Source: Haplodiscus bocki
Lineage: Eukaryota
Assembly: GCA_965655095.1 (NCBI GenBank)
Contig: OZ296648.1
Coordinates: 5,394,001-5,458,000 of the forward strand
Direction of reading: 5' to 3'
Length of the DNA: 64,000 nucleotides
In this document: positions 1-35,326 of the stretch, one piece after another
How the letters are laid out: every line of letters starts with the position of its first letter
How positions within the stretch are numbered: position 1 is the stretch's first letter
The notes under the pieces: model-generated
What the model saw: the letters and a program-made list of their open reading frames with translations, nothing else
Told to the model about the DNA's origin: nothing
The model's database searches: none
Position numbers and translations under genes: made by a program

Positions 1-48
1 GAAAAAGAGAGGGGAACACAGAGATTTGTATATTACAGCAAATTTTTT

Positions 49-3000
49 CTATGGAAAGCCCATTTCAAACACTGGGGCGGCACGTCGATCACGCCCACTC
101 CGACGCGACTTGCCACGAGAAGCCTGTGCTGCCAGAACGGACGCAAAACTTGAATCTCCTCCTAAAGATCGCATCTGTGGATAAGCTGGGGGACTGGACA
201 TTTCAGATATCCGCGGCAACTTCAAGGGGCTCCGAGAGATTTGTCTCTTCCGCTTACTGGGGGAAGAACGAATTTTCCTTGGCTCAGGATGACCAAGAGC
301 ACGGGAAACAACTGGCACATATCAACGAGCTCCTCCTCAACGACATCTGAGATTCTCACCCCTGGCTTTTATGCTGTCTCACTGCGAGGGGTGCCACCAT
401 GATACCAGCGCTCACTCGTGTCTCTGGCAGTGCGACGGTGCAACAAAAGCCGATCCCAGCAGGCGCGCAGATCAGTGATGACTTGGCTCGCATATGCTGA
501 CTCCACCATTCTCCACGGGGCCTAGACTGGACTTGATGTAATGCTATCCGCGATAGCAACAGACTCAGACAACATTGTCAAGCCGGAATCTGAGAATAAA
601 CTTCTCTGTGTGAAGTGCCGGCTCCGAACACAATCCTGCACACGCACTTCTTCTCCTTTGGGGGCGAGACTGATAGGAATTTTTTCGCCACGAGTTGCAG
701 GCCCACGGATCACAACTATCGTCAACTGGATTACCTAAAACAGCAGAATCTCATGAGAAAAAGAAACAACTCTTGGAGGCCAGAACAACATGTTTGATAG
801 GACAGGATACATACTTTGTACAGGTGCTGACGAGCACGGAAATCAGCCTGTGCAGAAGAGAACGACAGAGCGTCACTTTCGTCAGGGCGGCTCCTTGTGG
901 TAGACCGTTCAAGCTGCAGCTGTTACTGCACACAGGACTGGTACTCAGCCCTGCATGCCTCAACTTTGCTCTCCCTGGTCCAACCCTTCTCCAAAAGCCC
1001 ATCCAAGAGCTTGTTAAACAGCTGAAAATGAGCGACGTCATCACCACCTACCACACTTGCAGGGCAGAAGTAGCCCATACCCTGTCCTATGACTAATCCA
1101 GCAGCAACGGTCGACAGACTACAAATCACAAATTCTTCTAGAAGGCGACGGGCATCACAGCAAAACTCTGTCCGTAGGCACTGGCTACCAACTTTGTCCA
1201 GTGCAGTCATCACACGCGAGTGCCGGAGAAAAAGTCTTTCTCATCAATCGCAGGAAACCGCGGGTGATTCGCAACAACGTAACCCACAAGTGGCAATCAT
1301 GAAGTTTTCTTAATGTTCTGCAGCAAGCAGTAGACATATCGTGCCAATTCTCCGAAGGCGAGGTATCTTTGATCTGCTGCAGTGGACGACTGAATAAAAC
1401 TGTTGGCAACTGAAACAGAATTATGTATCATAGACATGGCAAAAAAACCACCACACCCATGCTTTGCTATGATGGAGAAATCCACCCGAAAAAAAATATG
1501 GAAGCATTGTTGAAAGATACTAGTGTGTTCCTATGAAATGAGGAGTAAAAATTTTCCGGAATCGCTACGTGCCCATGGAAACTCAGCAGAAGAATATATG
1601 GGATTACTTACAGATTTCAATGATAAGATGCAGCAGACGCCACTTCATCCACGCCATTTGGTCCAGGTAGAAGAACCCGTCAATCTGATTCTTCCAAACA
1701 TTACAGATACAATAATTGCCGGTATGAAAATACACTAACACAATCGAAACAGGAAGAACTTACCACAAGACTATTGCCGCCCAGATACTCGCAAAGGGAT
1801 TCCGCGAGAACGGTCGATCCGCCGCTGATTGACGCCACCGACACGTCAAGCCACAGTGCACCTATTATTCGACCCAATGCTGAAACTTCTTCATGAAGAT
1901 TGCTGCCGTAGCAATCCAACGTTGCCACACAAGCTCTCCGCAACATTTTTATGTCCCAGGTGCGAAGAAACACCAGCACTTCGTCGCCTTGTTCCTCAAA
2001 CTCGGCGCGGCAGCTCCCGTGTGACTTTGCCCAATTGATGCAGCAAGAAAAACTCCGAGACGACATCCCATTCAGTATGATGGACCGAAGCATGCAACAA
2101 ACTGGATGCACACAGGCTACGTAGAAAATACAGGGCAACTGTAAATACTAACCAAGATCTCGTCGCGTGACCACGTAACATCCACTTTGACACGGACAGC
2201 AGACAAAGTAAACTGCGCCTTGAGCTGGTACACCAGCTCATAACTTCCGCCCGGATGCAGGACTTCAATGAAGGAGGAAAATTTCGCCATAATCCTAAGG
2301 TTCGGGTCCACTGCAGCACTCTCTTTGACAATGACGTCCTCGGAAAAAGGGTACTCCCTGTCTCTCACGACCAAAGGAGCCTTCATTATCTTCTCCCGTT
2401 GTCGCTCCACTTGTTCTGGACTCATGACATTCCCCTCATAATCCAACACTTCCCAGCCTGGCGTCTCCAATCTCAAAAGTTGGTCACAGGGGAAATGTTT
2501 GCTGCCCCGGAAGTGTCGCAAAACTTCATGGTGACCATCAGTCAATACAGAGACGTCCTTGCGCCAAATACGGCAGAAGAAACATTGGGTTTTGTAGCAA
2601 CATCCGTGAGCCCAGTCACAAAAAACTGCCCAAAATCACTGGCCCCAAGTTTTCTTCATTTTGTACGTCCTTTTGCACCGCAACTTTCGCCGGGGCTCAC
2701 CCATGTCCCACTCATCGCCACTTGTGTCACTGGTGTCGCCCAACCGAAGAACAGCACCGGGCGGCTTCTGCTCTACCTGCTCCAACCGGCTCAAGACATC
2801 ATCTAGTCCTGTGAACAGCAAATTTGCGTGAAAGATTTGGCGCATGGAAAGAAATATCAGGAGTGTGACCAAGAAACTTTGGTGAACTACAAACAATACG
2901 AAGAAAATAAAACAAAAAATGACGATGAAAACAAGTAACACTAACTAGTCACAATGGGGTGAAGAAATTATGCCCGCTCCTCAGCACAAATCGCACGACA

Positions 3001-3900
3001 AAAACCGACCAGCTGGTGACCTGTCGCCTTGATGGGCGTGATAGCATGATCGGCGGAAAAGTAGTATAAAACAAAACAACGGAATTGAGGAGCCGCCATG
3101 GAGCGCCACTAAAGAAATCCTCATTTCAGTTGATACACACCATCGTTGAAAGCCTGCTCCAACGACGTTCGACTGTGCTCGCGACTCGGGAAGTCTTTTG
3201 GGTCTGATGCACTTCGCGCTAGAGGCACTAAACGGCGAGATATTCTGGCACTTCTGAATCTCCTCTGCCTCTTCGTTTCAGCCTCTGTCGAGCTGTCCCC
3301 CTCTCCAGAAGCTAGTGGGACTTCCACTGGACTTGAAAACAGCGGAGATGAAAACTGACTCAAACCTCGCCTAATACAAAAGTTAAATTAACTCATAGTT
3401 GACTCACAATCCATGGGAGCATCTACTCTGGCGCCAACACCTTCCTCGCTCAACGTGGTGCGCCCAACCTCGAACTCAGTCCCGGAATAACCCGGAGCAC
3501 AGGAATCACTAATTTCTGGATGAACAGCAGGCTCACCAGATGAATCGAACACTAAAACACAATAGCCCCATGATGCCTTCTTCATGAACAGCCGCGCGCT
3601 GAATACTAGCTTACGGTATACATGAGTGGCCACCATATTATTCCTACACACTAAAAGCTATACAGCAATGAAGACACCCTCTGCCAACGTCTCCACTGAC
3701 AAATTTGCACGTGCCAGCGCATCCGCAAAAGTCCAGCAGACTCATCATCACCGACTGCAGTGATACCGCCCAGGATATCAACAAAACTATCATTGTCATC
3801 AGCTTCTTCTTCCAGAACACAATGACATGCAGCACTCTCCTCAGGACTCAGATGATCCACAAACTCCTGGCCTTCTTGCACAGCCACAGACACACCTGGT
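49..3900 (-). pseudogene. Multi-exon antisense cargo gene of element C; C2H2 zinc-finger protein, hAT-transposase-like (decayed)
   Basis: Chain of minus-strand ORFs (3651-3893, 3388-3651, 3121-3363, 2636-2941, 2117-2545, 1701-2138, 923-1213, 522-725). Zinc finger C-R-I-W(C)-x16-H-x5-H at ~2490-2572. Introns join the ORFs in frame: 814-735 (GTATGT..TTTTAG) gives HLYK|VIQL; 2152-2085 (GTTAGT donor, degenerate CGG acceptor) gives DEIL|SIIL. Homologous to 21900-25730 and 9273-10480. Confidence 0.7.
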
Positions 3901-4039
3901 ACAACACAAAAATTTGAGAATAGACTGGCCGTTCACGCAGTCTAATCAATTGCCAACTCCCACTTCGCAGAGCTTGACATACCCTCAGTGAATAGGGCGG
4001 TCACTTCACCCTCACCGCAAGACCTAGCCATTACAGATT

Positions 4040-4200
4040 TGGTGCAAGACGCGGCTAATGAGCTATTACATGATGGATTTACATAGTTATTCATGAAATT
4101 CCTAATTATTTCGATTTAGGTCAATACTTTGTCTGTCAACAATGACGTCAGCATGCATTTTCAGGGACACATTGAGGAACGATACGCAAATGTTCCTTCG
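4040..4200. promoter_or_regulatory. Putative bidirectional promoter between the antisense gene and the sense ORF3
   Basis: Non-coding block between two divergent ORFs. It is conserved with element A: 4131-4179 GTCTGTCAACAATGACGTCAGCATGCATTTTCAGGGACACATTGAGGAA vs reverse complement of 9130-9178 GTCTGCCAGCAAAAACATCAGCATGACATTTCAAGGATACGTTGAGGAA. Contains TGACGTCA (4143-4150). Confidence 0.45.
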
Positions 4201-4428
4201 ATTTAAAGACTCCATTTGCGAGATTTAATTACATCTCATAACTCCATCTTCAATCCTTACTTCCTAACTTCATCGACGCTGAGCAGGAACGCGGGAAAAT
4301 CAAAGGAAATCCCGTTCGATGAAAAGTGAATTATGATTACCTGAAATACTGATCACTTTCTGATTTCAATTGCTTCCATTCAGTTACTCCAATAAAAGGA
4401 GATTCCTTAAGTTTTTAATGTTTAATGT

Positions 4429-5202
4429 TTGAAGATGGCCTCCAATATGTCAACCAAATCGATTGACTCGGATGTATTTTATGTTGAGCAGTCGTCCAAC
4501 GACCCAAGTCTACCCAAACCAAACACGCCGATTGTCCTCAGCTCCACAGAGTTGTCAGGCAATGATACCCGAGAAATGATATTAATATCATCCATTGCAT
4601 TGCATGAAACGCAGTTTGTGACAATCGACTCTGGTTCGAATGAGCCGACAATGTCATATGGATTTGGACGGCAACTCCCAATTATTCCACCAAGCCTGAA
4701 TGATCTGAATCTGCGGCCTAATCCATTCAACATTCTGGCAACAATGGCGCTGCTAAACCCTACAGGAGATAGAAATGACAATAATTGTAGCCCCCAGTCA
4801 CCGGAGCCATCTGACTTTTCGCCCATCTCAACACGAGCCATGAACCTAAGTACTTTTGATACTTGGGAAACTCCGCATACCACAACGGACGACAACACTT
4901 TCTATCCGGAGGACGAGCCAAAACGAGTACACTGGACTTCTCCCCTGGATGAAACCTTCCATTCGGAAGGCAAACCCAGATGAATCTATCTGTTGTCCAG
5001 TCCATCCCCGCCGTCACCACCTCGCAAGATGCAGTGGAAGTTGGAGATGGGAATGTCCTTTTCAAAAAAAGAGGGAGTGTCACAGCACGTCTGCGAAGCC
5101 TGCCGACTAGTGATTCCCCCAACAAAGGACATTCAATTACCGTCGACTCTACTGAGGACTGAAGACAGTAAGACCATTTTTATGAAGCTAAAAAACCTAT
5201 AA
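4429..5202 (+). pseudogene. ORF3 of element C: Ser/Thr/Pro-rich protein crossing the PPT into U3 (one frameshift near 4980)
   Basis: ORF 4429-4983 plus ORF 4993-5202 (..GMSFSKKEGVSQHVCEACRL..) spans the PPT and LTR start. The VFYVE(Q/H)SS and CEAC motifs recur in element A at 8700-8850. Confidence 0.6.
5064..5077 (+). other. Polypurine tract of element C
   Basis: AAAAAAAGAGGGAG immediately 5' of the LTR start TGTCACAG. Confidence 0.8.
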
Positions 5203-6809
5203 GTTTTATCACTTACATATACCGCATCATATTTCATCAATTGTATTTTAAGGATACGTAGTAGTTACGTATCCACCTAGTACACATATATGTAATCCAT
5301 GCCAACGATACGTAGTAATTACGTATCGTTCCATAGCATGTAGTTCATGTAAAAAGCACGGATCCTATACGTGTAATTCTGAGGAACTGATCCGGATTGG
5401 GACGGGGCAGATACGGAGCAAATGGATATTCATCTACTTCCGTAATGTAGTTTTATGTTATTATTAGGTGGTATTTCTTTATAATTATTCTAACTAGTTT
5501 TTATATAAATCCACCTTTTTAACTGACTGGTGCAGTGAGTAATTTAATCGAACTGACAGTTTCAACAAGTTTTCAATAGCGGTTATCTATTATTACGGAG
5601 CGTGACTTTAAAAGTGAATCTTTGTTCCGTATGTGTTCCGTCGTAACTAATCTGGTAACGTCAGCAGAATTTCAGCCAATCCGCTGCGCTACTATCCTGT
5701 GTCACTTTGGACGGAGACGGAACGATTTCGTAGCCACCTGATTCATTCTCCTCAGTAGTACTGCGGAGAGCAGTGCTACAAGCGGTTACGTGGTCGCTCC
5801 GGATTGCTCCGGCCAAAGCTAGGCCTGAGCTGGCAGAACTCTGGAACGGACTAGGAAAATCCCTAGTTTTGTTCCCATCAAGGGAATTAATCGATGCAGT
5901 ATACGACCACATGAAAACAATAGTTTTTCCAGCTTTTATATGAACTTTATTTTAGGTATTTCATTTATTTTTCGAGGTATTTTTATTAATTTCCTCTGAT
6001 GGAAAACTTCTTTGATCTTTGTTTATGTTATTATTTATTGTGTCGGCGCGGGAATAGCCGCTTTGATGTCCATTTCTGACGGATTGGACTCGTATCCGAA
6101 AAATGGAAAGGAGGACGTCCATGAAGGAAGAAATGGACGGAGAGGTGTTTATTTCCTGCCAGAGTCGGCATTTATCCCTTTATAGATAATATGATTGAAG
6201 TACTTTTCCCTATTTGTACCTTGATTTAGCGTGTAATTAATTACGTTTCCCGCCAAGGAAACGCATAAATAGGAGAAAAGAAAGTACTATTATTATTATA
6301 TAAATTGCAGCCTTTCGGTATTGTACTGAATTTGATATCATTAACTGCTTGCATTTATTGAACCCTTCTCCCTCATAATAAGATGAGATTAACACCTATG
6401 TTTTAAAAAACAAAACTTCAATTCAGTCTTCACAGCTGACAACACTTTTCCTTCAGTATCATGGCAACTATGGGAAATAAGAGAAAATTAGCGGCAGTTT
6501 CGAGAGAAACACCTGAAAACACAAGGAACAGTCAGTCACAGAACACACTTGATCAAGAAATGGCTCAGGATTATAGCTCCCAGGTTTCTGAAGAGATCGA
6601 AGGGAGAGTAACTAAAAAAATTTCAAAAGAATTCAGCTGGACGGAGTCCCGCATTTTGGCTGCTTTGTCTAAACTTGTTGAATTTCTTCTGATCCCGCAA
6701 GTTCGGACTTGTTCCATAGCCGTTCCAGGAACATCCAGGAACAGCGACTCATAAAACCGGGAACCCATTGGTGATCGTTCCCCAAACGATCCCTGTCCCA
6801 AAGTGTTTT
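5078..6809 (+). repeat. 3' LTR of element C, left part (continues at 15525-15586)
   Basis: Begins with TG right after the PPT, is homologous along its length to the element A LTR, and contains the gag N-terminal ORF starting at 6461. Confidence 0.75.
6461..6809 (+). pseudogene. gag: gag N-terminal segment encoded inside the LTR of element C
   Basis: MATMGNKRKLAAVSRE..QVSEEIEGRVTKKISKEFS.TESRIL is homologous to the N-terminus of element A gag (14106 downward). Premature stop at 6752-6754. Confidence 0.7.
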
Positions 6810-8749: not shown

Positions 8750-8930
8750 CTCCCCTTCTTTAAGAAAGGACATTCCACGGTCAATGTTTTTTGCCTGTTG
8801 TCATTGGGCTCTGCTCTTGACGAATGTTCCACATAGAAAACACAATTGTCACGATGTAGCCAATCACATGAATTGCATCAACTCGTAAATGAAGATTTTT
8901 GTATGTTGATAGAATCCATTGAAAAAACCA
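8700..8930 (-). pseudogene. Internally deleted ORF3 remnant of element A
   Basis: DNCVFYVEHSS (~8818-8850) matches IDSDVFYVEQSS of C. The downstream GGAATGTCCTTT..PPT..TGTCGCAGTATGCTTGTGAAGCCTGC (VSQYACEAC) matches C 5050-5103. Confidence 0.55.
8750..8761 (-). other. Polypurine tract of element A
   Basis: AAAGAAGGGGAG abuts the 3' LTR start and is absent in front of the 5' LTR. Confidence 0.85.
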
Positions 8931-9272
8931 AGGAGAACTTGTGAAGTGGCGGGGCAAATACGGAAACATTCCGTAGCTTTCTTGTCAGGCAGGAATTCCT
9001 TTGCAGTGTGAGTCGTGAAAGGTAAAAGAATGAAGTTAAGTGACATTAAGTGTAGTGTGATGTAAAGGATATTAGTCTTTAAACAAGACAAGGAATTGAA
9101 TATTTGAAATGAGGAAATTTTGAGTCCCATTCCTCAACGTATCCTTGAAATGTCATGCTGATGTTTTTGCTGGCAGACACATCCATCAAAATTAGATAAT
9201 ATAGGGGTAAAAGATAAAGTATGTAAATACACAGTTTAATAACTTGATAGTCTAATAGCCCCGTGCTTCAAT

Positions 9273-10480
9273 TTGAACAAGAAGAAAATTTTGTCAGTCA
9301 ATACAAAGGAGAGTGTTGTGGGTGTAGAAGACGTGGGCTCATCTCAGGGTGAGTTCGTCACTCAGGTTGCTGGAGCTGGCGAGCGAGAATTTCCAGTAAT
9401 TCCCGTGATGTCCCGGTTGAGAAGTTGCAGAGAAGTGAAGAAAAGGCGAGGTTGGAGAATCCGGAGTCAGTCCGTATCGAAACTGCATGCGTTGCTGCTG
9501 ATTTGGGTGTCCAGTACCCTGTCGTTTCCAGAGACTTTATCAAGGATGGGGATAAACGTCCCATGCCTGGAGAATGTGCCACTATAACTGCTGATGAGGC
9601 GGATGATTATGTGGATGTCGTTGGGAGCGGTACCCCGGTGCATAGTTATATGGAATCTGAGGGGTTCACCTTCAGAGAGTCCGTGAGCAATGCTTTCTTG
9701 AAAGACTTAAGCGGGGTTCTTGATACTTCTGGCATTCCCTCGTTAAAATTTTTAATTAATCTTATCTTCACTCTGCTTTAGCTTTTCTCGGTAGACTTTA
9801 CATATTCGCGACTATGTAAGTCTTTTTAAGCTAGTTATATCCGTGCGCACTATATCCTGAAGATGGCATCATGAGGTTGTTGGATTTCAGTGTATGGATC
9901 ATCTGGAGGGCCTGCTGGTCGTCCGCAGTGCTCCCGGGCAGTTTCCACTGAACTGTGTGGATCGGAATTTGACGTTGGTGGGCGACCTCTGAAAATGGGG
10001 TGCGGAAGAGAGCTTCCAGGAAAGGCGGCCTCATGGATATCCTTGAGAGTTGATTTTCTTCACATATAATTCAAATTCTCCGTTCATGTGCATTCATGTT
10101 TTAGCAACGTCTTTATGTGTAGGTGCTAATGAGGAGAGGCCTGTGAGATTTGGCCAGGAGAAATTTTCTACTGGGGTTGAGAGCGAGAGCCAGATTCGAC
10201 TGAAGAAGGCGATTGTAAGGAGACGTTTGGCTCCTTTTTCAAAATGCCGCATTGTCAAGAAAGATCCCCTTTGTTCCAGTTTTGATCGGAGCCGCACCTT
10301 CTTGAGGCGAGTTCTTGATGAGGGTAATGCTTTGGTTTCCTTGTGGAGATTTCTAGTATGATTCCTCATTTGATCCTAATTGCACCTTGTTTCCGTGTTA
10401 TGGACCAGTTTACTGCAGATCCTGCTTCTACGAGCACAAATGTCACCGGGCACCAGGTCGTGTTTAATAAGTGTCCGCTC
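9273..10480 (+). pseudogene. 5' part of the antisense cargo gene in element A
   Basis: SGGPAGRPQCSRAVSTELCGSEFDVG matches C SGEPAVHPEISDSCAPGYSGTEFEVG. STGVESESQIRLKKAIVRRRLAPF..SRTFLRRVLDEG matches C STEAETKRQRRFRSARISRRLVPL..SRTSLEQAFNDG. TGHQVV matches C TGHQLV. Candidate acceptor TGTGTAG|G at ~10122. Confidence 0.6.
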
Positions 10481-10559
10481 GGGTAGTTTTCGTGGATTAC
10501 TGGGATGACTCTAGTTTCCATACTACTTTTTCCCTAATTTTGGTAATGGTCAAATTTGG

Positions 10560-10850
10560 GGGTTCCGGCAGTACTCCGTACTCCTTTCCTGTTTATCGTC
10601 ACTAATCCATGGGAACTAGGAGATTTTTAGTAGCGTTCCTAGTCAGTTCCTCATTTTGTCGTGATAACAGCAGCTTGTACTAGGAAACTTCCAGGAGTAC
10701 TCCAAGGTGACTCCTCATTTGGTCGGGCGTCATCAGGGGGAAAACTAGGAAAGTTTCCGGACCACTCCTAGTTTCTGACTCATTCAGTTGGACGTTTCGG
10801 GGCAAACTAGGAAAGTTTCCGTATCACTCCTGGTTCAATCCTCATTTGGT
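10560..10850. repeat. Degenerate ~63-bp tandem repeat (4-5 units) in the internal region of element A
   Basis: Recurring ACTAGGA(A/G)A..TT...A..(A/T)CC...CTCATT at ~10615, 10679, 10744, 10807. Confidence 0.6.
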
Positions 10851-11577
10851 AGTCTGCTTCAGAGGTGGGAGGGAGTATCCAGTTTCTGCCATTCTCTGGT
10901 CACCTTGTTTGTGTCGTTTCAGTTGCACACAATTTCACCGAATTGGTCTAGGAGCGTGCTGATTATGGCTATTTGGCATTCGGGGAGCTCTCCCACTTTG
11001 TGTATTGTTTGCTACAAAAAGTGAAGCGGAGTAGCGATTTGCCAGTCATTGAGAAGTGGGGTGCGAGAAGAAGTAGTCGTGATTGCCGTAGTGCCCCAGT
11101 TTTCCAAGGGGGTTACCAATTACAAATTAATTGTTTTTATGTATAGACTTCTCGCATTTGAAAATTAGTAAAAGTTTGTATGAATTCAATTAGATTAGCC
11201 GTCAATTTTGCATGGGTAAAATGAGTAGGAAGCGTGTCGCTGTACAGGAAATATCCTCAAAACACAAGGAATATTTGTGTGTATTCCGTATTGTACCCGG
11301 AATCAAATTTTGGTGGATTTTCCGGAATGGTTCCGGAAACGCTCCGGATACCATCTAGTGATATATTAGGGCAGTGTGATGAGGATCCAATTTCCAGTAT
11401 CTGCAAGTGCCAAAAATTGTATTGTTCCATCTGTTGTGCTCGGTAGTTATTTCAGAACGTCTTCTAGGCGCTTGAAAGAATATATAGATTTTCCGCGTAT
11501 CATTTCCATAACACGTTCCTAGGGTTTCCGGAAAGTGTACGTATCCGTTCCATAGCACATACTAGGACAGGTTCCGA

Positions 11578-12360: not shown

Positions 12361-12416
12361 CCAGTTATACTGTTCTGTGCGTCCTGTTGAAAATGTCCAC
12401 TTTGTTCTTCCGGTTT

Positions 12417-15524: not shown

Positions 15525-15586
15525 GGTGTTCTCTTCCCATCACTCTGGTAATCTAAATGGTTGAGAGCTGGAAGAGTCCTCCCACA
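15525..15586 (+). repeat. Right-hand end of the element C 3' LTR
   Basis: Removing element A and one TSD restores the gag frame NDPCPKVVFSSHHSGNLNG*ELEESSH. The segment ends in CA at the position equivalent to the element A LTR end. Confidence 0.7.
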
Positions 15587-16162: not shown

Positions 16163-16290
16163 ATATTTAGAGTTCTTACACTTTTTTAAGCATTCATTTA
16201 ACATTTCTAAGTTAATTTTTCAACATTAACCAAGAAATAGTGCAATATTTGAACCTGAATCAAATATAACGCCTCGGGACAAAAATCTTT

Positions 16291-17236: not shown

Positions 17237-17270
17237 GGTAATATAGGTGACCAGTGGGGTTGTGGCGACT

Positions 17271-21899: not shown

Positions 21900-24800
21900 A
21901 TTGGGATAGCAAATCAAGAACTACCTGATCAGCGAATTTTTGTTCGTTTGGCCAGAGTGCTTTTCTTCACTTTCTAAAACCCGCGGTTCAACTGTGACAT
22001 GAACAAACACCTGGTTCCTCAGTTAGACGTCTATGAAAAATGAGGGATTTTGCTGGTAATTTACGGCGAACTTTCATAAGTTTTCGTTTTTCTGAGAGAA
22101 GAACCCAATTGCATGAGGAAGAGCAAAGCGAATAAGCTAGAGCGAGATGTTTACCCGATTGTGTAACCCGAGATGTGAAAATCCCAGAAACTGAAACTTC
22201 CCCAAAAAAACCAAAAACCGTTCTGCAAGGAGTTTCTTCTAAGGCCCATATTGAAAGACCAGAAGTTGTTGTTGACGTGAGTGGATAGTCTAGTGAGGGC
22301 AATGATGGGATCAGTGTTGGCAAATATTGTGCCTAGAAGTTACAGCCTTTAGTGAAGTGGAATTGAAAAAATTTGTTGAATTGGGTGAAGATTCAGTTGC
22401 TGAGGTTCTGGGCAAAAGAGAGGTGCAAGAGCAGATTACTTCTGGAAGGAAACTGTGGTGGAAATTGTTGATTAGTCAAGAGTTGGTCATGTTGTGGGTA
22501 GTTTGACGCCTGTGAAAGTCCTGGAAGAAGTGCGACGGACGTGGGTCATCGTCATTGAATGTTACTCCTGTTAGTATGCCTTCGAAACGTATTTTTATGG
22601 TATTTTTTACTCTGCATGAAGCCCCTGGAGACATACTTCATAGTTCTCAGCCTACGAAGTTCAGTGGACGTGATTTGAGGAATGGTAGTAAAACTGCGAC
22701 ATCAGTTGGAGGAGTTACTACAGTTACTAGGTGGTCAGAGATCGATTCAATGACTGCACGTTTTACTGCTGGAAAAACCGGGCCATATAGGTTGTCTGCC
22801 GGGAACGTGCACATTGAGGTGCCACCGAGGGAAGAGTTGCTTGCGCAGGAGAAATCGTCTCAGAGAACAAAGTGTTTTCATAGTCAGTCTGCGAAGACTT
22901 TGTTAAAAGACTTTGTTGAATCGAATCCACCCAACAAGTTAGACCCTGGTCATACCACCACCAGTTTGAGTGCGTATCAAATGATACAATTTACTAGAGC
23001 AGTATGGTTAGAAGTTACCTTGGAGTCATACGGGTTTTTGGAAGACTTTTTGCAACGGGCTCGAGGTGTTAGTAATTTGTGTGCCCATGATCAGCAAGGA
23101 CGGTCTCTTTTCCCTAGTGTAGCGGAATGTGCAGTAATTGATAGTGTGGCATCGCAGTCAAGATATTCGCTGCCAACTGTCTCTGGGTTTAAGGCCACAA
23201 ATGCGAAGGAGGGTGCCGCTCAAGCAGATGAAGCTCAACGGTTGGCAGTTGCTGATCAACCAGGGGGCTCATGTTCGATGGAAGCTGTCACAAAATTGTC
23301 AAGGCACGACGATATGCCATTAGCTGATATATCTTCGAAATTAAAGTCGAAGGAAAGAAGAAAATGGATCCTTTCAAATTATCCCGTGAAGGCCGTCCAA
23401 ATCCAATTCCTGTCTGTGGTAGAGACGAAAGTGGGTGGGTATTGAGTGAGGAGATGTTGCAACAAGTTCCATTGGCTAAATTGGTTGCGACTAGAAACAA
23501 AAACACGCTGGAACATCGGCTTAAATTTTAATGTAAAAGTTGCAGAGTCAATGCCTCGTTGCGTTCCTGTGGCGTTTACGAGATTAAACGGCACTACCAG
23601 ATTGCAACTCTTCTTCGGCAAGACTAGCGTTTTCTGGATCAATATTTCCCTGAGGCATTGAGGGGAAATGATGCTGGAGTGTTGCATGTTGAAAGTTGGT
23701 AGCTGAACGTGAAGTATACATGGACTCTCTTACACTCGAAATGGATCATAAAGAACCCCTTCGTTATGGTGTGGTGTAGGCAAAGCAGTTCATGTTCACA
23801 AATGAAGAAGATCGCGTGCGTTATCAGCTGCAACGATTAGCAAAGTTTCTGAAGGGGATTGGACAGTTGTGGGTGTTGGACGACGTGTGGACGCCGGTGG
23901 GGATCTTTGCCGGTAATTCCGCTGCGACATCGGATTTGAATTGGAGCAAAGAGCTTATCAGTGTAAGTTGGTTCATTTAGTCACGGTTTTGTAAATTGAC
24001 GTAGTTATGCCACTGATGTTAGAAATAACTGGGATTGTAGTGCATAAGGGTTTCCATTTCATTTAACTGGAAGTATGACGCTGGGTTTGTTACTTCAGGG
24101 AATTCTTCATCAATATTTCGTCCGTCTGTTGCTACATTTGAAAGCTGTTTTGGTCAATTGGAATTGTGCTTCATCAGATTTGTTGTGATGCGCTGCAAAA
24201 GGAGTGTAGGCTTGTGGGAAGGGAGACGGCTTCTAGATTTTGCTATGCAGCGTGTTGACCTGAACGCACCTTCAGTGTGGAGTCATTTGTCAATGAATGC
24301 AGTGTCTTTGTGCGTTGTTTCGAGGACCCCTGAAATTATTAGTAGTGGTGATGTTGGAGAGGACGTTATTAAAACTCTTTGGATAGGTGTCTTAGTTGCA
24401 AAGTGGACGTGCATTACCCATTTGATATCAAAAGCTTGCATATGCAAAACTGTTGCGAAAGCAAAGTTATAGCACGATGGGGTGCAATGATATGTCCGCC
24501 CTTTTGAGATCACTTTTAGCCCGATTGTTGGATACTTTGGATCTGAAATGGACGCAAAGCACTCAATATTTGCAAAGAGTAAGTCGTATTTGTGTCATTT
24601 GCCTTAATTGTGATGTGTGTTATGAGAAATGCGGTGTAATGTTAAAGGCTCGTGAGGAAGAAGTCCTAGAAATCTCAACTCTCAATTTGGTGGCCCAGGA
24701 ATTATATCGGCACGGAAACAATGTCTGTGATTTCAAAGAGTCAACTGGACAGAAACAAGAGCTTCAAATGGTGAAGAGGCATGTAAGTGTAATTTGAAAA

Positions 24801-25730: not shown

Positions 25731-25885
25731 TCATTTCATTTGCTTTGGAACTGTAGCGCAGTTGTTTTTGTTTCTTATTGATTGTTATAACCCGATAGAT
25801 GTTGAAAAAAAGAAAAGAATTATTAAAAAAGAAAAAGACAGACGCTCTGTGCGCCGTCGTGTTGATTGAATACTTGGCACCTGTC

Positions 25886-28800
25886 TAATATCTTTATGAG
25901 TCTGAGAAGTTTGAGTTAGCGTTAAGTCGTTGGTTGTATTTACCTCCATGCGAAAATTTTTCAATTTGAATAGTTTCATCACCTTCATTGGCAAGAAAGT
26001 TCACTTCTGCAGATGCGGTAAAAATTGTATCATGTCGAGCATTCGAATTGTGACATGACTTTAAAGTATCGTCGTTTTCATTAGGAGCGTCACTGACTAC
26101 GCGTGTATCATTTTTGAGCCTTTATGTAACCTTGTTTTGAGTGTGTATCGGAGTGTACTTCGTCATTAACGAAATCTGATGCGTTGTTGTGTCTTTGAGA
26201 TGAAGTTTCTTTAATAATATGTTGAGTCACAACGTCTCGACTGCTTGCTGTTTCGGACGTTATAAGATCACGGTATATTTAGGGGTGACCTAAATCTGAG
26301 GGATTAGATTCTGCTTCCATTTCTATACTGTACACTTCAGCGTGAGGAAAGACAATATCGTCGTCGATTCTTAACTTTTCGTTGGTTTAGCTGTCTTCTA
26401 AGGACGTGTTCGTAGTATACTTGCGAAGTCTGATACGGTGTAAATTTTGAGTTTTGTTGGTATTAATTTTGCGAACAATGTATTTTTCGTTTGGGAACAC
26501 TTCGTCTACTACATAAGGACCAATCCACCTACAGTCTCCAAATTGTACTTTTGACCATTGTTGATATGCTTTAGGTTGCATTATGTAGAACCTTTTCTTA
26601 CAATGGCGAGTTTTTTGATTATTTTCATAACATTTTCTGTATCTGATGTATAACTGCATTACCTTTTTTGTTTTGTTTCACAAAAAGCATTGCATTTTTT
26701 TCAAAAATTTGCCCGCAAAATCTGTAGTTTGAACTAAACGTTTATCAAGTTTTAGTCCGAGTTTGCGGTTTTGTATATTGTATGGTACCCAACCTTTAAA
26801 AATTCGGTTAGGTTCACGTCCAAACTTTGTGTGATGCATTGTGTTTTGTTTAAAAAACTAGTGATAAATTCTTGTGCCATTGTTTGCGAAACTCTCTTGA
26901 CGATTTTTTTGGTGACGTCCTTATTGTGATATGCGTTCTTTCCAACACTCCGATAGTTTGTGAATCGTTTGTTGTTGCATGGCGGAGTGTGATGCCTAGA
27001 CCTTCGGCAATTTCGTGTATCACATTTGAGACAAAGATTGAGCCTTTGTCAGTTATCACTAATGTAGATAAATAGGCAAGTCTAGTCATGATGTCGGTGA
27101 TCATTTTTGCGGTGTTAACGGCAGTAGGATTAGTTAGCTGGAAGGCGAAAGCGTATCGTTGAATTACATCAATTGTTTTAATTTGACTTTCTTCTACAAA
27201 TTTGCGAACGTGGTTCGATATTGATTGAAAATAAAACTCTTATCTGATTTCTTGCATCATTTTTGAGATACCTGGATGTTTGCCTGCTTCACCATGCAAT
27301 GAATTTAGTGGTGTGTTTTTTAGTTGCACTGGTAGTAACACTTGTGGTTATGTCTTCATAAAATATAGTCTCAGATTATGATGGGGTTTTCTTTCAACAA
27401 TAATGAGTGTATCTAGGGTTTGTTGCTAATACTTGTTCGTCGAAAGTTAATCCAAACATTTGGGTTTTGTGATGAACAAGCATTGGCTCTTAATCCTGTT
27501 CAATGAGTATGCGTGGGACTTCATTGAATGGTTCCATGCTTTACATCAGGGTGTTTGTGTACTTGTCATTTTATGACAGTGTCACACGGCTATTACTGGA
27601 GGTTCCATTTGTACAATATTACGTCGTTCTTGTTTGGGTTGCCATAATTCTTCTTCAGACGGCGCTTCAGAGTCCTCTATGTGAAAAAACTGCCTTCTTG
27701 TGCTATTCCTGTTGATTCAAGGTTGATTACGATTGGTTGTGTGGGAACGTCTTCTCAGATTTTAAGGACATTTTTTTCATTTGGGATTGTTTCCAAACGT
27801 GATAGGAAATCAACAGCAGTGTTCATTTGCCAGGAGTGTGTGCTAGAGTGAAGTTGATTTGTAAAACAAAGTCACATGCATTGCATTATGGTGGTGGAAT
27901 CATTTAGGTTTGGAAACATCGTGACACTGAATTGCTATCTCTGATAATGATGAGTAGTTTTGGTGTTCCCCAAAATATATGTCCAAATACTTTAACTGCC
28001 AAACAAATCACTAAAAATTCCTTGGGGTAAAAAGACATAATTTGTGACGGCGTAAATCTTTTGGAACCATATGCTACTGGGGCATATGTTTTGCGTGTTG
28101 ACGTGAATTTATGATCAGAATCATCTCCCGTCAAAACTGCATACCTTGCGTTTTTCCTTGGGATTAATTGTGCGTCTGATTACTGCTGTCTGAGTACTAC
28201 TTGACAACATTTGTCCAAGACATCGTTAATCTCACGCAATTCATTCATCCGTTCTGGCCTGATGATGGTTTTGACTCTGTTTTATGATATTTTGAGGAGT
28301 TCAAAGAAAGAGTTTAGTCTTTCCGCTAAACGGGGTGTCTCATTTGTGGTAATAGTTCAGAAAGCCAACATACCGTTTTAGAGATTTTTTAAGGCGAGAA
28401 ATATTAATTTTTTTCCAAAAAATTCGTAATATCTTGTTTCTGTGGAGTTACTCCTTTTGAAGTTACAGTTCGTCCAAGGAAATCAGTTTTTTCCAGTTCC
28501 AAAGTGGCGGTTTGCTATGGGTAGTTTGAATCCTGCGATTTGAATGCATTTGAAAAGTGCGAAAAATGCTCGTAAGTTGATGATCAGTTGCTTGAGAACT
28601 TGAGGCAATGCCGATGTCATCGACATCTTGTGCGAACTGGTCTGCTTTGATGACATGGTCTAAGTATTCTGGTGTATAACTTGAGAATGCTCACATAGAT
28701 CTGCTAAAGCCTTGTGCTGGTCTTTGATATGCAAAATATCTGCTGGCAAAAACTAAAGCGAGCTTTTCTACAGGTTGTTCGTCTGCCATTTGTAAACAGT

Positions 28801-30720
28801 GGTACGCTCGGGAGCCATCAAGTTTCCAAAATAATTTTTACCGACATGTGATTTACAGCATCTGTCAATGTGCTGACCGGATGTTTAATATTTTGGTAGT
28901 CGTCTGATATCAGGTTGTTGTTTTTTCGTAGATTTACAAGAAGACGTGAATTACTGTTTGGTTTTCTTTTCTCGAAAATAGTGATCACGTATTTGCCGAT
29001 GTTCCAATGCTAGAATGGTATTATTGCTTTATTTATGTAAAAGGGCTGATTCTAATCTAATGTATTTTTTCAGATTCATTGAAGTTGGCAACCTCTGACT
29101 ATAAGCTGGGCTTTCATCAATAGGAGTCATTTTTAAGTGAAGTCATTTTTGATGCCAATGTCGGATCTGTGCCTTACAAATATGTCGTGGATTTCAACGA
29201 GTAAATCCTCAATTGCTTGACGTGCTTCTTTGTCCAAGTTTGAAACAGTCCAAACAAAGTGGGACAAAATTTGGTCACATTATTCTTGCTTGTCCTGTGG
29301 GTTTAGTTGTCGAAGCTTCTGTAAAGCTATCATTTCTTGGATATACGTTTCTGCATTGGTGTATGTTGAGTCTCATCATCGGGTTCCTGAGGTGTAGCTG
29401 ACCAATATGTTTCGTTAGGTTCTTCAAATTTGGGCATTTTCAATACAGAGTTTGCGTATGGAAATGCATAATCGTGATTTGTGTCTAGAAGATAACGCAA
29501 TGGTGCTAGGTTGATTGTTTCGATATACTTCGCTGGCTCTGGTGTTAGTATTGAGAAAGTAGCGATGTGCCTCACCTTTTTCAGTGTACATCTGTGTTCT
29601 GAGAAGTTGCTAATGAGTACTGTGTATAGCTTTCTTTCAGATTTTGTTAAGGCTGGGCAAATGATGAGATCGTCATTGTCTCCTAGATCAAGAGAGTGCT
29701 GTATTTTGTCTGTTACTTCATTTACTGGGTAAACTTGCAATTTGATGTAGATCACAGTTCCTTTTTCTGGTTCAATCACCATGTCTGTTGAATTTAATAA
29801 AGTTTTGTTTAGAATGGAGTGCGTGTTGTAGGTATGTTTGAGCTGCATGGAAAAGAAAAAAAAATAATTACTCCTTGACGCATGTCTAGAATGGTGATGT
29901 TCCCTTCGAAAAAAGTCAATACACATATTGGCCTTGTTAGATTGATCATGAATATGAAGCTTTCTTTGAAAAACATGTCACCAACTACTAATTGAGTTTT
30001 AATTGTTGCACTTGGTGTTTCTAAATGTTCATTCGATTCTGTTTTTTAAATTTCCGGGGTGGTCCAACATTTAAATTGTTTGCGTTGCTGACAGTTGAAT
30101 TTTCCGTAACTGTGCTTCTGAATTGGCACTTGCCAAGGCGCTTGTATCATTAAGGCCATCAATGTTTAGTTCTCTGGGACCCATCGGAAAATATAGCACC
30201 TTCCTTTTGATTTTCAACAAGGAGTTTGTTGACAAAGTACAAATTTCTTGCTTTTCCCAGGAATTGATTGAAGTTGTGGGATGATTTCTGTGTCAAGGCC
30301 CGGATTTCTACAATTTGGTGAAATTGGATTATGGGTTGATTTTAGTAAAGGTTGATTGTTGGGAAATTGTGGATTGACTGTCCATTAAAGAATCATCGCC
30401 TATCTGAGATTGTCTCATAAGTGTGAGACTGTTAAGTCATCATCTTCAATTTGTTCCGGTGATTTGTCAAAATTGTGTAAGAACTCAAAGTTTTCTTGAT
30501 CATAAAAATCATCATCCCAGTAACGGTCTCGATGATATAAATAGTCAGTAAAATGTGATTCTAATTCAACAATTACTGTTTGTGATCGAAATCATGTAGG
30601 ATTGTTTATGAAAACTGTTTTCATCTGTTGCTGCCAGACAACTGATGCGACACTTTTACACAATGTATCATATGTTCGGTAAATTAAATTAGCTGGATCG
30701 GATGTTACCTATTTTGTTGC
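25886..30720 (-). pseudogene. pol: pol polyprotein of element B: aspartic protease, reverse transcriptase, RNase H, integrase (many stops and frameshifts)
   Basis: PR LNIDGLNDTSAL (~30140-30170). RT LDGSRAYHCLQMADE..AYQRPAQG..AQDVDDIGIA (~28600-28830). RH APVAYGSKRFTPSQ..KEFL..FGHIFWG (27904-28134). IN LHGEAGKHPGISKM, VITDKGSIF..QTIGVLERTH (26850-27104) and GPY/F module WIGPYVV (26387-26659). Confidence 0.92.
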
Positions 30721-30988
30721 GGGTAATATAGGTGACCAGTTGGGTTGTGGCGACTTTAGTTTGCGGGTTTGGTTTTATAAAGTCAAAAGTCTGGTTTTCA
30801 TTTTTTCATGGAATCAGGGCAACAATAGTATGGGCACTTGTGGATTCAGACTGACTATAATCTGGACCATAAATGTCCAGACTATGGTCAACCCGAAACA
30901 TAAACATTTATGACTAAACTATGATCAGCCTGGAATCATGCTCTGTTTATTATGACAGAGTATGATCAGCCTGCTCTTGTAAGGGAGG

Positions 30989-31179
30989 TCAACCCGGGGT
31001 ATTCAATTCTGATCTAATTCAAGTTTACCATGGTAAGTTTGATTTAGATCAAAATTGAGTGCCCCGGGTTGAGCATAAATCCAGAAGCTCGTGTGGCCAC
31101 TTATAAACTGAAAATCAGAACACTGCAGTGGTGTGATTTTCAGTTTCTAAGTGGCCACACGAACTTTTGAAATTATGCT
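30989..31179. repeat. Second copy of the twin palindromes
   Basis: Matches 15972-16162 with ~2 substitutions. Confidence 0.85.
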
Positions 31180-31307
31180 ATATTTAGAGTTCTTACAATT
31201 TTTTAAGCATTCATTTAACATTTCTAAGTTAATTTTTCAACATAAACCAAGAAATAGTGCAATATTTGAACCTGAATCAAATATAACGCCTCGGGACAAA
31301 AATCTTT

Positions 31308-31391
31308 TGCTACCACTGGGATTCGAACCCAGGCGGACTTTTGTCCATTTGGATCTTATGTCCAACGCCTTAACCACTCGGCCATAGTAGC
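31308..31391 (-). tRNA. trnL-TAA: tRNA-Leu(TAA), identical copy of 16291-16374
   Basis: Same sequence, including the CATAAGA anticodon loop and downstream TTTTT. Confidence 0.85.
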
Positions 31392-32287
31392 TTAAAATTT
31401 GGTTAGGTCAATCAATGTTCCAAATCATATATCTGAATCTCATTATACATTTTACATCATTCAGTTACGCATTTTTTGAGACCAGTCGAATTTATGCACT
31501 TTACGTAAAGAGAATTATGAGCACACTCAAAAGCAATTGTGTGCTGAAAACGTACGTTTCAAATTTTAATAAAAGTTGAAGATATACTTAAAGAAAATAC
31601 AGTAAGGTAAGAAAATATTAGATCCCTTTGTTGGGAGTTTATTGGTAACTACAATTGGCAAGATCGAGATTTCGCTTACCAGTGTTGTCGAACTGATACT
31701 CAGGTGCACTTAAATTAGAGCTGGTACCTTCCATTGGGTAATAATTCGGATGTAATGCTGTTGCCATTCCTCGGACAAACCGAGCCAAATCCTGTAGCTG
31801 TCTCGTGAGGGGTGCAAGGAAACATTTAATCTGCTCATCGACTTCCTCTTGAGTTATTGTGTGGATTACAGGCCCTTCATCTTCGTTAGCCTCAGGCGTT
31901 CATGACGGGACTACCTTCGGAGCTGCTGTTTTCGCTCATAACTGTTTGTCAAGCGAGTATCCGTGCGCGTTACGGCCCGTGTCGGTATCCGCCCTTGGGT
32001 AATGATTCGGATGCGATGCGACCAATAATATTTGGACGAGCCGAGTCAAATCTTCTGGCTGTCTCGCGAGTGGCGCGATGAAGCTCTTGGTTTGTTCATT
32101 TACTTCTTCTTGCGTTAAAGTGCAGACTTCGGGCGCTTCGCTTTCGTTGGTGTGAAAGTTAGGTGTTGAGGCCGGGAAGTCGCCATCATCCAAGATTTCA
32201 ACATTACGAGTCTCATCATTTCTGTCGTGATCAACGTTTAAATCTATTAGGTTGGTAATATAGGTGACCAGTGGGGTTGTGGCGACT

Positions 32288-34010
32288 TTAGTTTGCAAGA
32301 TTCTTTAGAATAGATGTCGGTGCATTTTGAGTTGACGTTCCTGGTTTATGACTTTCGTCTGTGGAATCCTTACGAGTTTCAGTTTTGTGCATTTTGGTTC
32401 TGTTAGCCGCATTTGAGCCATTCCAGCACATATCTGGCGTATGATTACTTCTCTGGCAGTGCGGACAATATAGGAATTTTTTTGACTTTTGTTTTTCGGT
32501 ATTTTGCTTTTCATATTGTCGTTCCTGCTTCTTACGAATGCGTTTGAGGCATTCTTTGATAACACGGCCTGCTTATTTGCAGTATCGGCATAATATTTGC
32601 AGTTTTTCTGAGTTCTGTGGTTGGTTTTGCTTTCTTACTATTTTTGTTGTAGTTGCCATGGTGGTTATTGCTAGTTCTCAATCTGTTTCCAACACGATAA
32701 TTTCAAGTTCACGCTCTGGGTGTGCAAAAATTCGAGCATAGATGACATTTTCTAGGAATGCAACGTTGATTGAACGTTTAAGGTGTGGGGTTGTCCTGCC
32801 TATGGTAAACTGACTATCATTTGTTTTGCAAGAAATCCAACAGCTTGCTCGGCACATTCATTTTCTTCATCGAGGAAATCTGGTATTGATTTCGTGTTTG
32901 AATCGAAAGTGGGTTTATGCCATTTGCTGTGGCTTGTGATTGTGGTCTAACGTTCATTCGCCAGAATTTGAGGAGTACAAAATTGATTTTTTGTTTTTTT
33001 TTGTGGCATTCATGTTTCTAAATGTTTGTAATGCCTCTTTCGGAAGTTGTGGATGGAAATGGTTTATTTTCTTTGATTCTGACTTCTCCTGGTTGCTTTT
33101 TCAGCATACTTTGAAAAAAGTCTTCGAACTTGTCAAACTTGAATTTTTACCATCCAAGATCAATATGTTCGTTGTTGTTGGCTTCAATATTGCTGAAGAC
33201 TTTTGGAATCGTTGTTGGGATGCAATGCCTGAGATTGCAGCAGCAAATTCCCTGACGGGGTTGCCCGATTCTGAGTTTTATCTCTGCGGTGTTTGTTCAC
33301 CATTGTCAATGTGCTGTAGGATGCAATGTGTGTTGCCACATTTGGCGATTGTGTAAAATGATGAGGCAATGGGTTGTTTTGAGTTTGAATTCGTCCTTTG
33401 AAATAATCAGGGATAAAGTTTTGTGGGGCAACAACTTCTGTCATCATTTGATGAGCGTCCCTTCGGCGGTTATAGTTAGGTCCTTTTACCGTATAGTCGG
33501 TATCTTTTTATTTTGCAACTTTACAAGTCTCATCCTTTCTATATCGATCAACGTTTAAATCTTTTCGACTAGAGCCCGACATGAGAGGGGTTTCTTTAGT
33601 ATTCAATGTGATCCCAGCAATCCCCCTGATCATTTATTTGGACCACATTGTTGGGTCCCCTTTCTGATGACTCGGTGATAGATCTCACGGCTATTTCATC
33701 TCTCTGCATTACCAAATTGTTCACCACCATCAAAATTGCGCCAAGCATTACCTTTTTCACAGCCATAACAGCTCTATCAACCACATTTCTGATTTCGTCG
33801 ACAATTTTTTTTCCTTGACTCGATCCTGACATACACCATCTCCGTTCGCTGTAAACCCTTCAAAAATATTAGAACTACTGTTGGGTTGGGGTTCGAAGAT
33901 CTCATGCCCTATTGCACCTGCATTGGTATCATTACCAATGGCAAAATCGTTTACAGTTTGATTCAACTGACTAATCTGTCTTTTGTATCGGAGTGTCTTC
34001 TTTCCTTCAG
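32288..34010 (-). pseudogene. gag: gag of element B (starts within the 5' LTR; frameshifted)
   Basis: Close homolog of 17271-18990, with CCHC knuckles near 32420-32590 and a PBS-like TGATGACAGAAG directly after the LTR end at 33447. Confidence 0.85.
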
Positions 34011-35326
34011 AATCTATGTTGTGTAAAAATTTAAGAAGGACTCAAAGTCAAAATCAACAGAGTGAAACAACAATCAAAAGTATCAAATTTTATATTTGAT
34101 GTGAGTTATGGATACAAAGATCAATTGTTTTAACTAATGACCAAATTGAGTCATCAACTGTCGAGTAGAATAGTCGAGGATATTAATGATTTTCCTTTTC
34201 TTGACTTCGGGCAAAGGGGAACTGACGGTCTTGTTCTCTTCTCGTCACCCAATCAAGTTCTCCCGAAGGTGACGTTGTATTTGAAACATTAACTAAAAAT
34301 GTAACTTTAAGTGGAAAACTACCGCCATAATCATGACATCATATTTACATGTTTCGAAAAATAACATGAGCATTCTGAATATAAGTCAACAAAGAAAAGA
34401 ATACCTCCTTTGCATGACATTCGGAAAAATTATCAATGGCTGTGATGGTGATAATATATGTGGAGGAAAGGGCTTCATCTAATTTACATGCACAGATAAA
34501 ATTTTGTAAATAAGATGGCTTCATAATCTCTTGTATAAGACATATTTATGAATTAGCACAAATTGAGACTGATTAGGGGTGGTTATTATTTATGTCGAAA
34601 ATAGTTAGTGTGACGTAATTTTGATTTTAGTCGTAGAGTCCTGTACATTAATTCTCAGTCATTGTAAAATAGTAGAGGAAAACGTTTAAATGATTTCCAA
34701 AAAAAAAGATTTTTATGTAATTCCGTGAATAATTCAACATCAGTGGAAGCCTAAGATCACTGTTAGCTAATTTATTGTACCGCCGTCTTTTTTAATGCTG
34801 TTTTTTGCATCAATTTACCCGTCATTGGGTTGAGATTGACAGAAGTTCTGAATGGTAGTGCGGCGGAGGAACTAAAGCCTTGGCTGCCGTCGGCGACGTC
34901 AAAAGCACTTTTTCTGACATGATAAGTTAAAGGCGCTTGTTCTTTTTCAACGGTTAGTCAGTGTACCGTTAGCCAATCAGAATCTGACGGAAGAGCGAAA
35001 AATATTATAATATGAGACTACACTGAATTCGTTTCCTTCTTTGCGCTCAAGTTTGCTTCTTTTAGTGATATTTGTATGGATTTATATCTGACATAAAATA
35101 TAACATATTAGCTTCATAGGCTCATAAACTTATACATTCTCGTATAGGTCGTAAGGTACTCACAAATATAGAAATTTCTCGAAAAACTTCATTTCTGTGA
35201 ATGTATTCATAAGTGTACCTTAGTTTTGATCTTGGAACAGTGGCAAAACGTTTCGTTGGTGTTCCCCGCAGGTGTCTTCCTTGTCGTTTTGATATAATAT
35301 GCCGTAACAGGTGGCAGCATGTGACA
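33447..35326 (-). repeat. Upstream (5') LTR of element B
   Basis: Starts TGTCACA; homology to 18429-20285 stops at about this point. Confidence 0.65.

Follow-up and report, generated by a model that had tools for sequence, protein, structure and literature searches.

Introduction

Antisense extra open reading frames (ORFs) that are presumed to be regulatory have been described in plant Ty3/gypsy retrotransposons of the Tat/Retand type, where they are designated aORF-3R (Grande gene23, RIRE2, and Retand) (PMC7264820, PMC11963269). The antisense gene of Grande is reported to have its own promoter (PMC7264820, PMC11963269), and the word "intron" does not occur in the text of the review on the plant aORFs (PMC7264820). 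Among retroviruses, antisense genes are represented by HBZ of HTLV-1, APH-2 of HTLV-2, and ASP of HIV-1 (PMC11963269). Here, we describe an antisense gene of an animal long terminal repeat (LTR) retrotransposon, starting from a stretch of 64,000 nucleotides of Haplodiscus bocki (assembly GCA_965655095.1, contig OZ296648.1, positions 5,394,001 to 5,458,000 of the forward strand), which as a whole is called the window. The window contains three LTR elements, termed C, A, and B. They probably belong to a Ty3/gypsy lineage that carries a two-gene accessory module, consisting of an eight-exon antisense zinc-finger gene and a sense ORF (ORF3), between pol and the 3′ LTR. In the open-access literature, we found no animal LTR retrotransposon for which an antisense gene with introns has been described.

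A module of this kind had been proposed in an earlier note on the same DNA, together with descent of the antisense gene from a hAT-family DNA transposase. The gene structure, its conservation and copy number, and a level of purifying selection matching that of pol are documented below, followed by the origin of the encoded protein, the state of the copies in the window, and the relation of the module to known systems.

Structure of the antisense gene and ORF3

In a young natural copy of the element (contig L004), eight exons and seven GT..AG introns of the antisense gene combine into a single ORF that runs for 1,142 codons, ATG to stop, without interruption. The L004 sequence was used unaltered, with no base changed and no consensus built, and its exon borders were placed by inspecting alignments of four copies. 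Introns 1 to 7 are 134, 67, 299, 68, 73, 208, and 78 nt long. GT is found at all seven donors, with GT(A/G)AG or GTATG in five and GTTAGT in two, and the acceptor is TTCAG in six of seven cases and TGCAG before exon 4. The same splice sites and exon lengths are present in four other copies (L003, L005, L001, and L002), the older copies showing length changes of 1 or 3 bases, a few mutated splice dinucleotides, and, in L002, an exon 7 extended by 41 nt. The GT..AG introns noticed earlier in the antisense products are thereby borne out, with seven in L004 and their sites conserved in L001-L005. Intron 1 (L004 9154-9287; about 3673-3552 in element C) is 95% and 87% identical where the exons are 84% and 77% identical; being better conserved than coding sequence, it may hold a regulatory element.

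The predicted antisense protein begins with an acidic, probably disordered N-terminus (exons 1-3). Exon 4 contributes a basic patch, a single C2H2-like zinc finger, and the helices after it. Exons 5-6 correspond to an alpha/beta domain, exon 7 to a helical region, and exon 8 to a Ser/Pro/Arg-rich tail with a KRKRK motif at residue 1075. The finger ligands, C-x2-C-x16-H-x5-H, are common to the proteins of elements related to C (C-type) and to B (B-type). Three sequence features singled out in the earlier note, namely this finger, the "LLEKGW..EACRAEYQS" region, and the "HLYK-V(I/F)QL" string, are all present, and the last of them proves to be an exon-exon junction, marked here by the hyphen. 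The gene lies tail-to-tail with pol, separated from the pol end by a gap of ~455 nt in which AATAAA occurs ~170 nt past the antisense stop codon.

On its other side, the antisense gene is arranged head-to-head with ORF3, the start codons being about 400-410 bp apart. The ORF3 product is of low complexity, is rich in Ser, Pro, Asp, and Asn, and has short conserved motifs, and no Pfam match to it was found. ORF3 runs through the polypurine tract (PPT), and the stop of the intact frame is located ~78 nt inside the 3′ LTR. The spacer between the divergent start codons is among the best-conserved stretches of a three-copy alignment, and one patch of it (4130-4197 in C) is still recognisable in element A at 9179-9112. 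The spacer is a candidate internal bidirectional promoter. The proposed order, with a short spacer and then a sense ORF that enters the PPT and LTR, is found in C; only the last ~35 codons of ORF3 are present in A, and the arrangement could not be confirmed in B.

Copies and abundance of the family

The 172-codon ORF of element C that includes the finger (2635-2120, minus strand) has 840 relatives (clusters at 90% identity) in a large protein collection, 70-81% identical to it and all of them unnamed ORF calls from ENA assemblies. A profile of this ORF gave 818 clusters at 50% identity, and another exon used as a query gave 1,109 clusters at 90% identity. Subfamilies with 28-58 near-identical members are present, which indicates recent amplification. 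The relatives that were traced come from a single assembly, ENA sample ERZ26859043, to which all five contigs encoding these proteins (L001-L005) belong.

The layout is the same in each of the five contigs: gag and pol are on one strand, the finger gene is on the opposite strand downstream of pol, and the sense ORF and an LTR follow. The Pfam families RVT_1, RT_RNaseH_2, RT_RNaseH, Integrase_H2C2, and rve are found in this order on single pol ORFs of L001 and L003-L005. The elements are assigned to Ty3/gypsy (Metaviridae) by the order of reverse transcriptase, RNase H, and integrase, by LTRs with TG..CA ends, and by a primer-binding site (PBS), a PPT, and a CCHC gag. Element C is 73-77% identical to L001 and L002 over the antisense gene, ORF3, and LTR. 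A pattern scan of JGI metagenomes detected two contigs at 84-90% protein identity, in projects Ga0126343 and Ga0126342, the former being the metagenome of "Cyphastrea sp. 2" (bioRxiv 10.1101/391565), a scleractinian coral. On this evidence, the host of the lineage would probably be a stony coral. A coral-metagenome contig (L009) shows the same module layout with its reading frames open. Thus, the position of the antisense gene and the sense ORF is constant among all C-type copies retrieved (L001-L005 and L009).

Selection on the antisense gene

The ratio of nonsynonymous to synonymous substitution rates (dN/dS) of the antisense coding sequence is 0.14 for L004 vs L001, 0.18 for L004 vs L002, and 0.20 for L001 vs L002, over up to 1,125 codons and between copies that differ by 15-25% in DNA. 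The identical calculation in two wrong frames gives about 1.5, and pol of these copies has a dN/dS of 0.15. It follows from the match with pol that the antisense gene has been under the same constraint as the polymerase during diversification of the family. The purifying selection among copies that the earlier note had proposed to look for is thus evident.

The B-type lineage

Element B represents a distant lineage, in which pol is ~40% and gag ~30% identical to the C-type proteins. Its 309-codon ORF on the antisense strand (22516-23442) has only six relatives in the protein collection. Two of these (P0124 and P0125) run on into a finger whose ligand spacing and flanking residues are as in the C-type protein, and through them the homology of the B finger was recognised (tblastn, E = 7e-4); in B itself, the finger region contains two stops. 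The C-type exon 4 profile also matches B-type ORFs of two related contigs, L007 (E = 2e-8) and L006 (E = 1e-7), over 53 positions only. No match to the profiles of exons 5, 7, and 8 was found in B, L006, or L007, and a BLAST-level comparison of B with C or A gave nothing (tblastx/blastn, best E ~1). The earlier view that the antisense products are homologous to each other could therefore be retained for C and the pieces in A, and for B not beyond the finger of ~53 residues.

L007 is colinear with B over the antisense region, pol, and gag, with ~68% DNA identity. A frame-wise comparison of the two gave ratios of nonsynonymous to synonymous differences (pN/pS) of 0.32-0.50 in plus frames at 22750-23650 and 24550-25450, and a weak coding signal continues in B to about 25,400. 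The mirrored minus frames are low too, so that the strand of the downstream part is unsettled and any downstream exons are uncertain. As judged from the finger match, two sub-lineages that are only distantly related both have a finger gene at one and the same antisense position. One collection entry derived from the window itself (P0121, 420 aa, 22489-23748, plus strand) reads through the stops, a GGY-stop-V in the window being given as GGYWV; the first stop, read as W, is taken to be TGA under a non-standard code.

Origin of the antisense protein

As the earlier note suggested, the antisense gene could derive from a hAT transposase domesticated by the retrotransposon, its catalytic residues gone and its product now used for DNA binding or targeting. 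We consider this origin unlikely. The spacing of the finger is BED-like, and zf-BED was matched below threshold in one of 103 family members (E = 0.16), in agreement with such an origin. The recurrent sub-threshold Pfam matches are all of the C2H2 finger type, other families of which are matched just as weakly in these 103 members (ZN292-like in eight, DHX34-like in four, and zf-met in two). No hAT-related family was detected by Pfam in the window ORFs, in the exons of L001 and L002, or in read-through proteins across exons 7 and 8 (P0312 and others), and Dimer_Tnp_hAT (PF05699), DUF4371, DUF659, and the hAT RNase H-like family were not detected in any of 51 + 103 (154) family members at E <= 10. 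Searches of PDB chain sequences gave no match to two profiles or two single exons.

Structure prediction provides another point in favor of a hAT origin. An AlphaFold model of P0092, a natural ORF that extends, with intron 4 read through, from the finger to mid-exon 5, has a pLDDT (predicted local distance difference test) of 65 and shows a beta-hairpin of the finger, confident helices, and a beta-beta-beta-alpha-beta run. The run, which follows helices in this model, has the strand order of an RNase H-like core. Against this, the best Foldseek match of the P0092 model in PDB has E = 0.09 and TM < 0.2, no transposase or RNase H protein was matched, and BFVD gave nothing; the fold tests covered part of the protein, with models of low to medium confidence and alignments that are shallow outside exon 4. 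Hence the search for an RNase-H-like hAT fold envisaged earlier yielded no transposase match. A model of P0312 (exons 7-8 with the retained intron) had a pLDDT of 44, was unusable, and was kept out of the fold search. The exon 7/8 junction, "DVLSFC..HLYK-VFQL..GSSAKSDEF", resembles by eye the C-terminal hAT motif, a likeness that no test bore out.

Terminal inverted repeats (TIRs) and an 8-bp target-site duplication (TSD), which according to the earlier note would mark an independent DNA transposon insertion, were looked for around the antisense gene and not found; there is one AT-rich 12-nt inverted pair, with unlike flanks. With Pfam, PDB-sequence, and Foldseek searches all giving no hAT match, descent of the antisense gene from a hAT transposase is unsupported. 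At the level of these comparisons, the antisense protein is an orphan with no detectable relatives outside its own family, which makes it a candidate for a new fold or function.

Still less probable is that an independent mobile element or a host gene landed once in the retrotransposon and has since been carried passively, being of no service to it. Gene transduction by retroelements is known (PMC7264820), and the presence of introns shows that the gene was not acquired as a processed sense-strand mRNA. However, a passive passenger is difficult to reconcile with dN/dS values equal to that of pol across such divergent copies, with the conserved splice sites, or with a related finger gene at the same place in a lineage as distant as the B-type. 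The gene also lacks both terminal repeats and a target duplication, and the best 150 of the 818 profile clusters are all short ORF fragments, with no single-copy non-element paralogue among them. The constant position in C-type copies, the pol-like selection, and the missing TIRs and TSD thus uphold the earlier proposal that the module is an integral part of a Ty3/gypsy lineage. That there is no antisense gene at all, and that its frames are shadows of sense coding or chance ORFs in GC-rich DNA, would agree with the ORFs of 100-200 codons that element C has on both strands over 2120-2800. This reading can be dismissed, because a 3.4-kb ORF continues through seven canonical introns under frame-specific purifying selection and no sense-strand ORF is conserved across the region.

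Proposed explanation

The explanation that we regard as probable is that the module belongs to the retrotransposon and is maintained by it. An LTR element uses its sense transcript as genomic RNA, and introns recognisable solely on the antisense strand therefore escape splicing before reverse transcription. The introns would persist since the RNA that is reverse-transcribed is the other strand and the template never loses them; the seven conserved GT..AG introns fit the earlier expectation that antisense introns survive retrotransposition. Transcription of the antisense gene could start at a promoter of its own within the spacer or in the 3′ LTR. The gene product might be a nuclear factor, as the KRKRK motif suggests, which would bind nucleic acid through the finger and the basic patch. 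Such a factor would be needed for the spread of the element, e.g., in transcription control, anti-silencing, or integration guidance, and deletion derivatives such as element A may use it in trans, as they would pol.

Several considerations weigh on the other side. The antisense gene itself served as the query for all copies, and a query with a sense-strand protein returned only the same locus. The homology between B-type and C-type proteins is demonstrable only over the finger. The dN/dS of ORF3 is unreliable because the proportion of synonymous differences (pS) is above saturation, and the estimate was discarded. Splicing and expression of the antisense gene are predicted from its sequence, and the suggested biochemical role is a guess drawn from the finger, the basic motif, and analogy. 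A more far-reaching version can be put forward only tentatively: the two genes may form a self-contained unit that a cnidarian lineage has kept through deep divergence (pol ~40%), with a bidirectional promoter, a disordered ORF3 product, and a fold-orphan protein required for propagation in transcription, anti-silencing, or integration targeting. Such a unit would be the first known in an animal to parallel the antisense regulatory genes of retroviruses and plants, and would far exceed them in complexity.

Elements of the window and decay of their modules

The three elements were located by self-comparison and boundary inspection (Table 1), and their orientations and approximate places are as previously proposed. 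The pol of C is outside the window. Its 3′ LTR is broken at 6809/6810 by element A and seemingly continues at 15525 for ~40 nt.

Table 1. Positions of the features of elements C, A, and B in the window, and of the exons of the intact antisense gene in contig L004
Feature	Position	Strand	Remarks
C interior	1-5076	+	LTR alignment vs A
C antisense gene (pseudogene)	49..4031	-	ATG at 4031, stop 51-49; tblastn of L004 protein
C exons 1-4	4031-3674, 3551-3399, 3332-3141, 2823-2153	-	
C exons 5-8	2084-1779, ~1693-1612, 1409-815, ~735-49	-	
C zinc-finger core (exon 4)	2471..2581	-	C-x2-C-x16-H-x5-H in intact copies; second Cys lost in C
Spacer between divergent start codons	4032..4434	.	74-81% identical between copies
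C ORF3	4435..5154	+	~240 aa in intact copies; premature stop 4981-4983 in C
C PPT	5063-5076	+	LTR alignment vs A
C 3′ LTR	from 5077	+	TGTCAC.. start; LTR alignment vs A, blastn
A	6810-15524	-	Non-autonomous relative of C, inserted within the 3′ LTR of C
A LTRs	6810-8749 and 13707-15524	-	98% identical, TGT..ACA ends
A antisense-gene remnants	9845..11116	+	tblastx, profile search, tblastn
A exon 2-like and exon 3-like pieces	9845-9979 and 10143-10322	+	
A exon 7 start joined to exon 8 end	10958-11059 and 11063-11116	+	
A gag	14103-12330	-	Retrotrans_gag/DUF1759 and zf-CCHC; 68% identical to L003 gag
B	15754-35331	-	Distant lineage
B direct repeats	15754-20290 and 30771-35331	-	4.5 kb, 91.8% identical, gag-like ORFs inside
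B antisense gene	22489..23693	+	N-terminal ORF 22516-23442; finger region 23343-23693 in another frame
B pol	30235-26327	-	Badly degraded; rve and RT_RNaseH recognisable by Pfam
L004 exons 1-4	8766-9153, 9288-9437, 9505-9699, 9999-10672		Positions in contig L004
L004 exons 5-8	10741-11364, 11438-11519, 11728-12332, 12411-13121		Positions in contig L004

The copies of the module in C, A, and B are dead relics of the two-gene design. The exon coordinates in C are approximate, having been mapped from L004. Exon 1 has lost its donor region to a deletion, and mutations affect the exon 2 donor as well as the exon 3 and exon 4 acceptors. The finger exon (exon 4) has a stop at 2638-2636, the second half of exon 5 is lost to a 309-nt deletion, and exons 1, 7, and 8 have in-frame stops and frameshifts. 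The C gene had been placed at 3900 to 49; its end at 49 is right, and its start is at 4031.

Element A, colinear with C in patches (tblastx and blastn), had been described as carrying the module, with the gene at 9273 to 10480. Fragments are indeed present, between 9845 and 11116, but do not amount to a full gene, and ORF3 is represented only by the end mentioned above; the finger exon and exons 5-6 are missing from the remnants. Protease and pol are absent from the 5-kb interior of A, which is therefore a non-autonomous derivative. Its PBS is TGGTGACAGGAG, after the 5′ LTR at 13706 downward, and its PPT is AAAGAAGGGGAG, before the 3′ LTR. The possibility that its "LTR" is a tandem-copy artefact was rejected, as proper TGT..ACA ends, PBS, and PPT are present. 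A clean TSD around A is absent (GTTTT at 6805-6809 vs GGTGT at 15525-15529) despite the high identity of the LTRs, both of which contain 61-bp tandem-repeat arrays (7795-8296 and 14693-15072) with differing copy numbers. The gag ATG and the first ~118-134 codons are inside the LTR, at 6461-6809 (plus strand) in C and 14103-13707 (minus strand) in A. Since the gag frame continues beyond the LTR and the PBS to the interior, every LTR, the 3′ LTR included, bears an N-terminal gag fragment.

The direct repeats of B contain gag and are thus not plain LTRs; B looks like a tandem arrangement of LTR, interior, LTR, and partial interior. Each repeat has a tRNA-Leu(TAA) gene (16291-16374 and 31308-31391, minus strand; 57.8 bits with Rfam, and found by ARAGORN) within a ~1.5-kb stretch between gag and pol. 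This stretch is absent from the related locus L007 and is possibly a tRNA-bearing insertion older than the duplication. The end of the direct repeat and that of the tRNA-bearing stretch are no more than ~10 nt apart, and this coincidence, together with gag in the repeats, suggests a tandem array rather than a single element. In contig L009, gag follows the 3′ LTR directly as well, although in that contig the high copy number of the repeat may have affected the assembly.

Two further features of the window lie outside these elements. A 3.67-kb tandem duplication (47407-51073 and 51082-54751) is 98.7% identical and shows no relation to C, A, or B. The sequence from ~55700 to 64000 forms a long satellite-like array in which the period is 9 bp and the higher-order units measure ~790 bp; several reading frames, on both strands, stay open there, which makes ORF lists misleading.

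Comparison with known systems

Of the systems that resemble the antisense gene, hAT transposases with BED/TTF-type fingers share with it only the ligand spacing of the finger and the alpha-then-beta-beta-beta-alpha-beta order. Their sequences and folds have no detectable similarity to the antisense protein, and the TIRs and 8-bp TSD that belong to them are missing here. LTR retrotransposons of bdelloid rotifers are, like the present ones, animal elements that keep extra genes downstream of pol, whereas their ORF3s encode recognisable enzymes or env-like proteins (PMC5408684) and the antisense protein here is an orphan. In the main text on the bdelloid elements, "intron" is absent and the sole use of "antisense" refers to small-RNA reads; the bdelloid ORF3s are typically expressed from spliced messages (PMC5408684) and would accordingly be sense-oriented.

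The retroviral antisense genes likewise encode proteins from the minus strand of elements that replicate by reverse transcription. HBZ, which is nuclear and made from a spliced message, regulates transcription of the virus. It is, however, a small bZIP protein, its transcripts start in the 3′ LTR, and its gene overlaps genes of the sense strand, while the antisense gene described here is five times larger and has a space of its own; no bZIP family was found in its product by Pfam.

Like this module, the plant aORFs add a gene downstream of pol and ahead of the 3′ LTR, in the orientation opposite to gag-pol, and occur across related lineages. They too are found in most copies, and their products have no clear relatives and are thought to be nuclear, DNA-binding, and regulatory. 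In contrast to the eight exons and 1,142 codons found here, the plant aORFs are single ORFs of modest size, most of them with Transposase_28 (PF04195), to which no antisense exon had a Pfam match. The module also differs from them in its animal host and in the divergent sense partner, ORF3.

The closest known cases are therefore the plant Retand/Grande antisense ORFs and HTLV-1 HBZ. Extra genes in LTR retrotransposons bear on how such elements gain regulatory independence, a step toward complex retroviruses. The new features here are the animal host, a very large intron-bearing antisense gene, selection of pol strength, and about a thousand copies with young intact members, which make the family a well-powered system for asking what role antisense extra genes play. 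The family further suggests that a spliced gene of the normal eukaryotic kind can be kept by a retroelement if it is placed on the strand other than the replication template.

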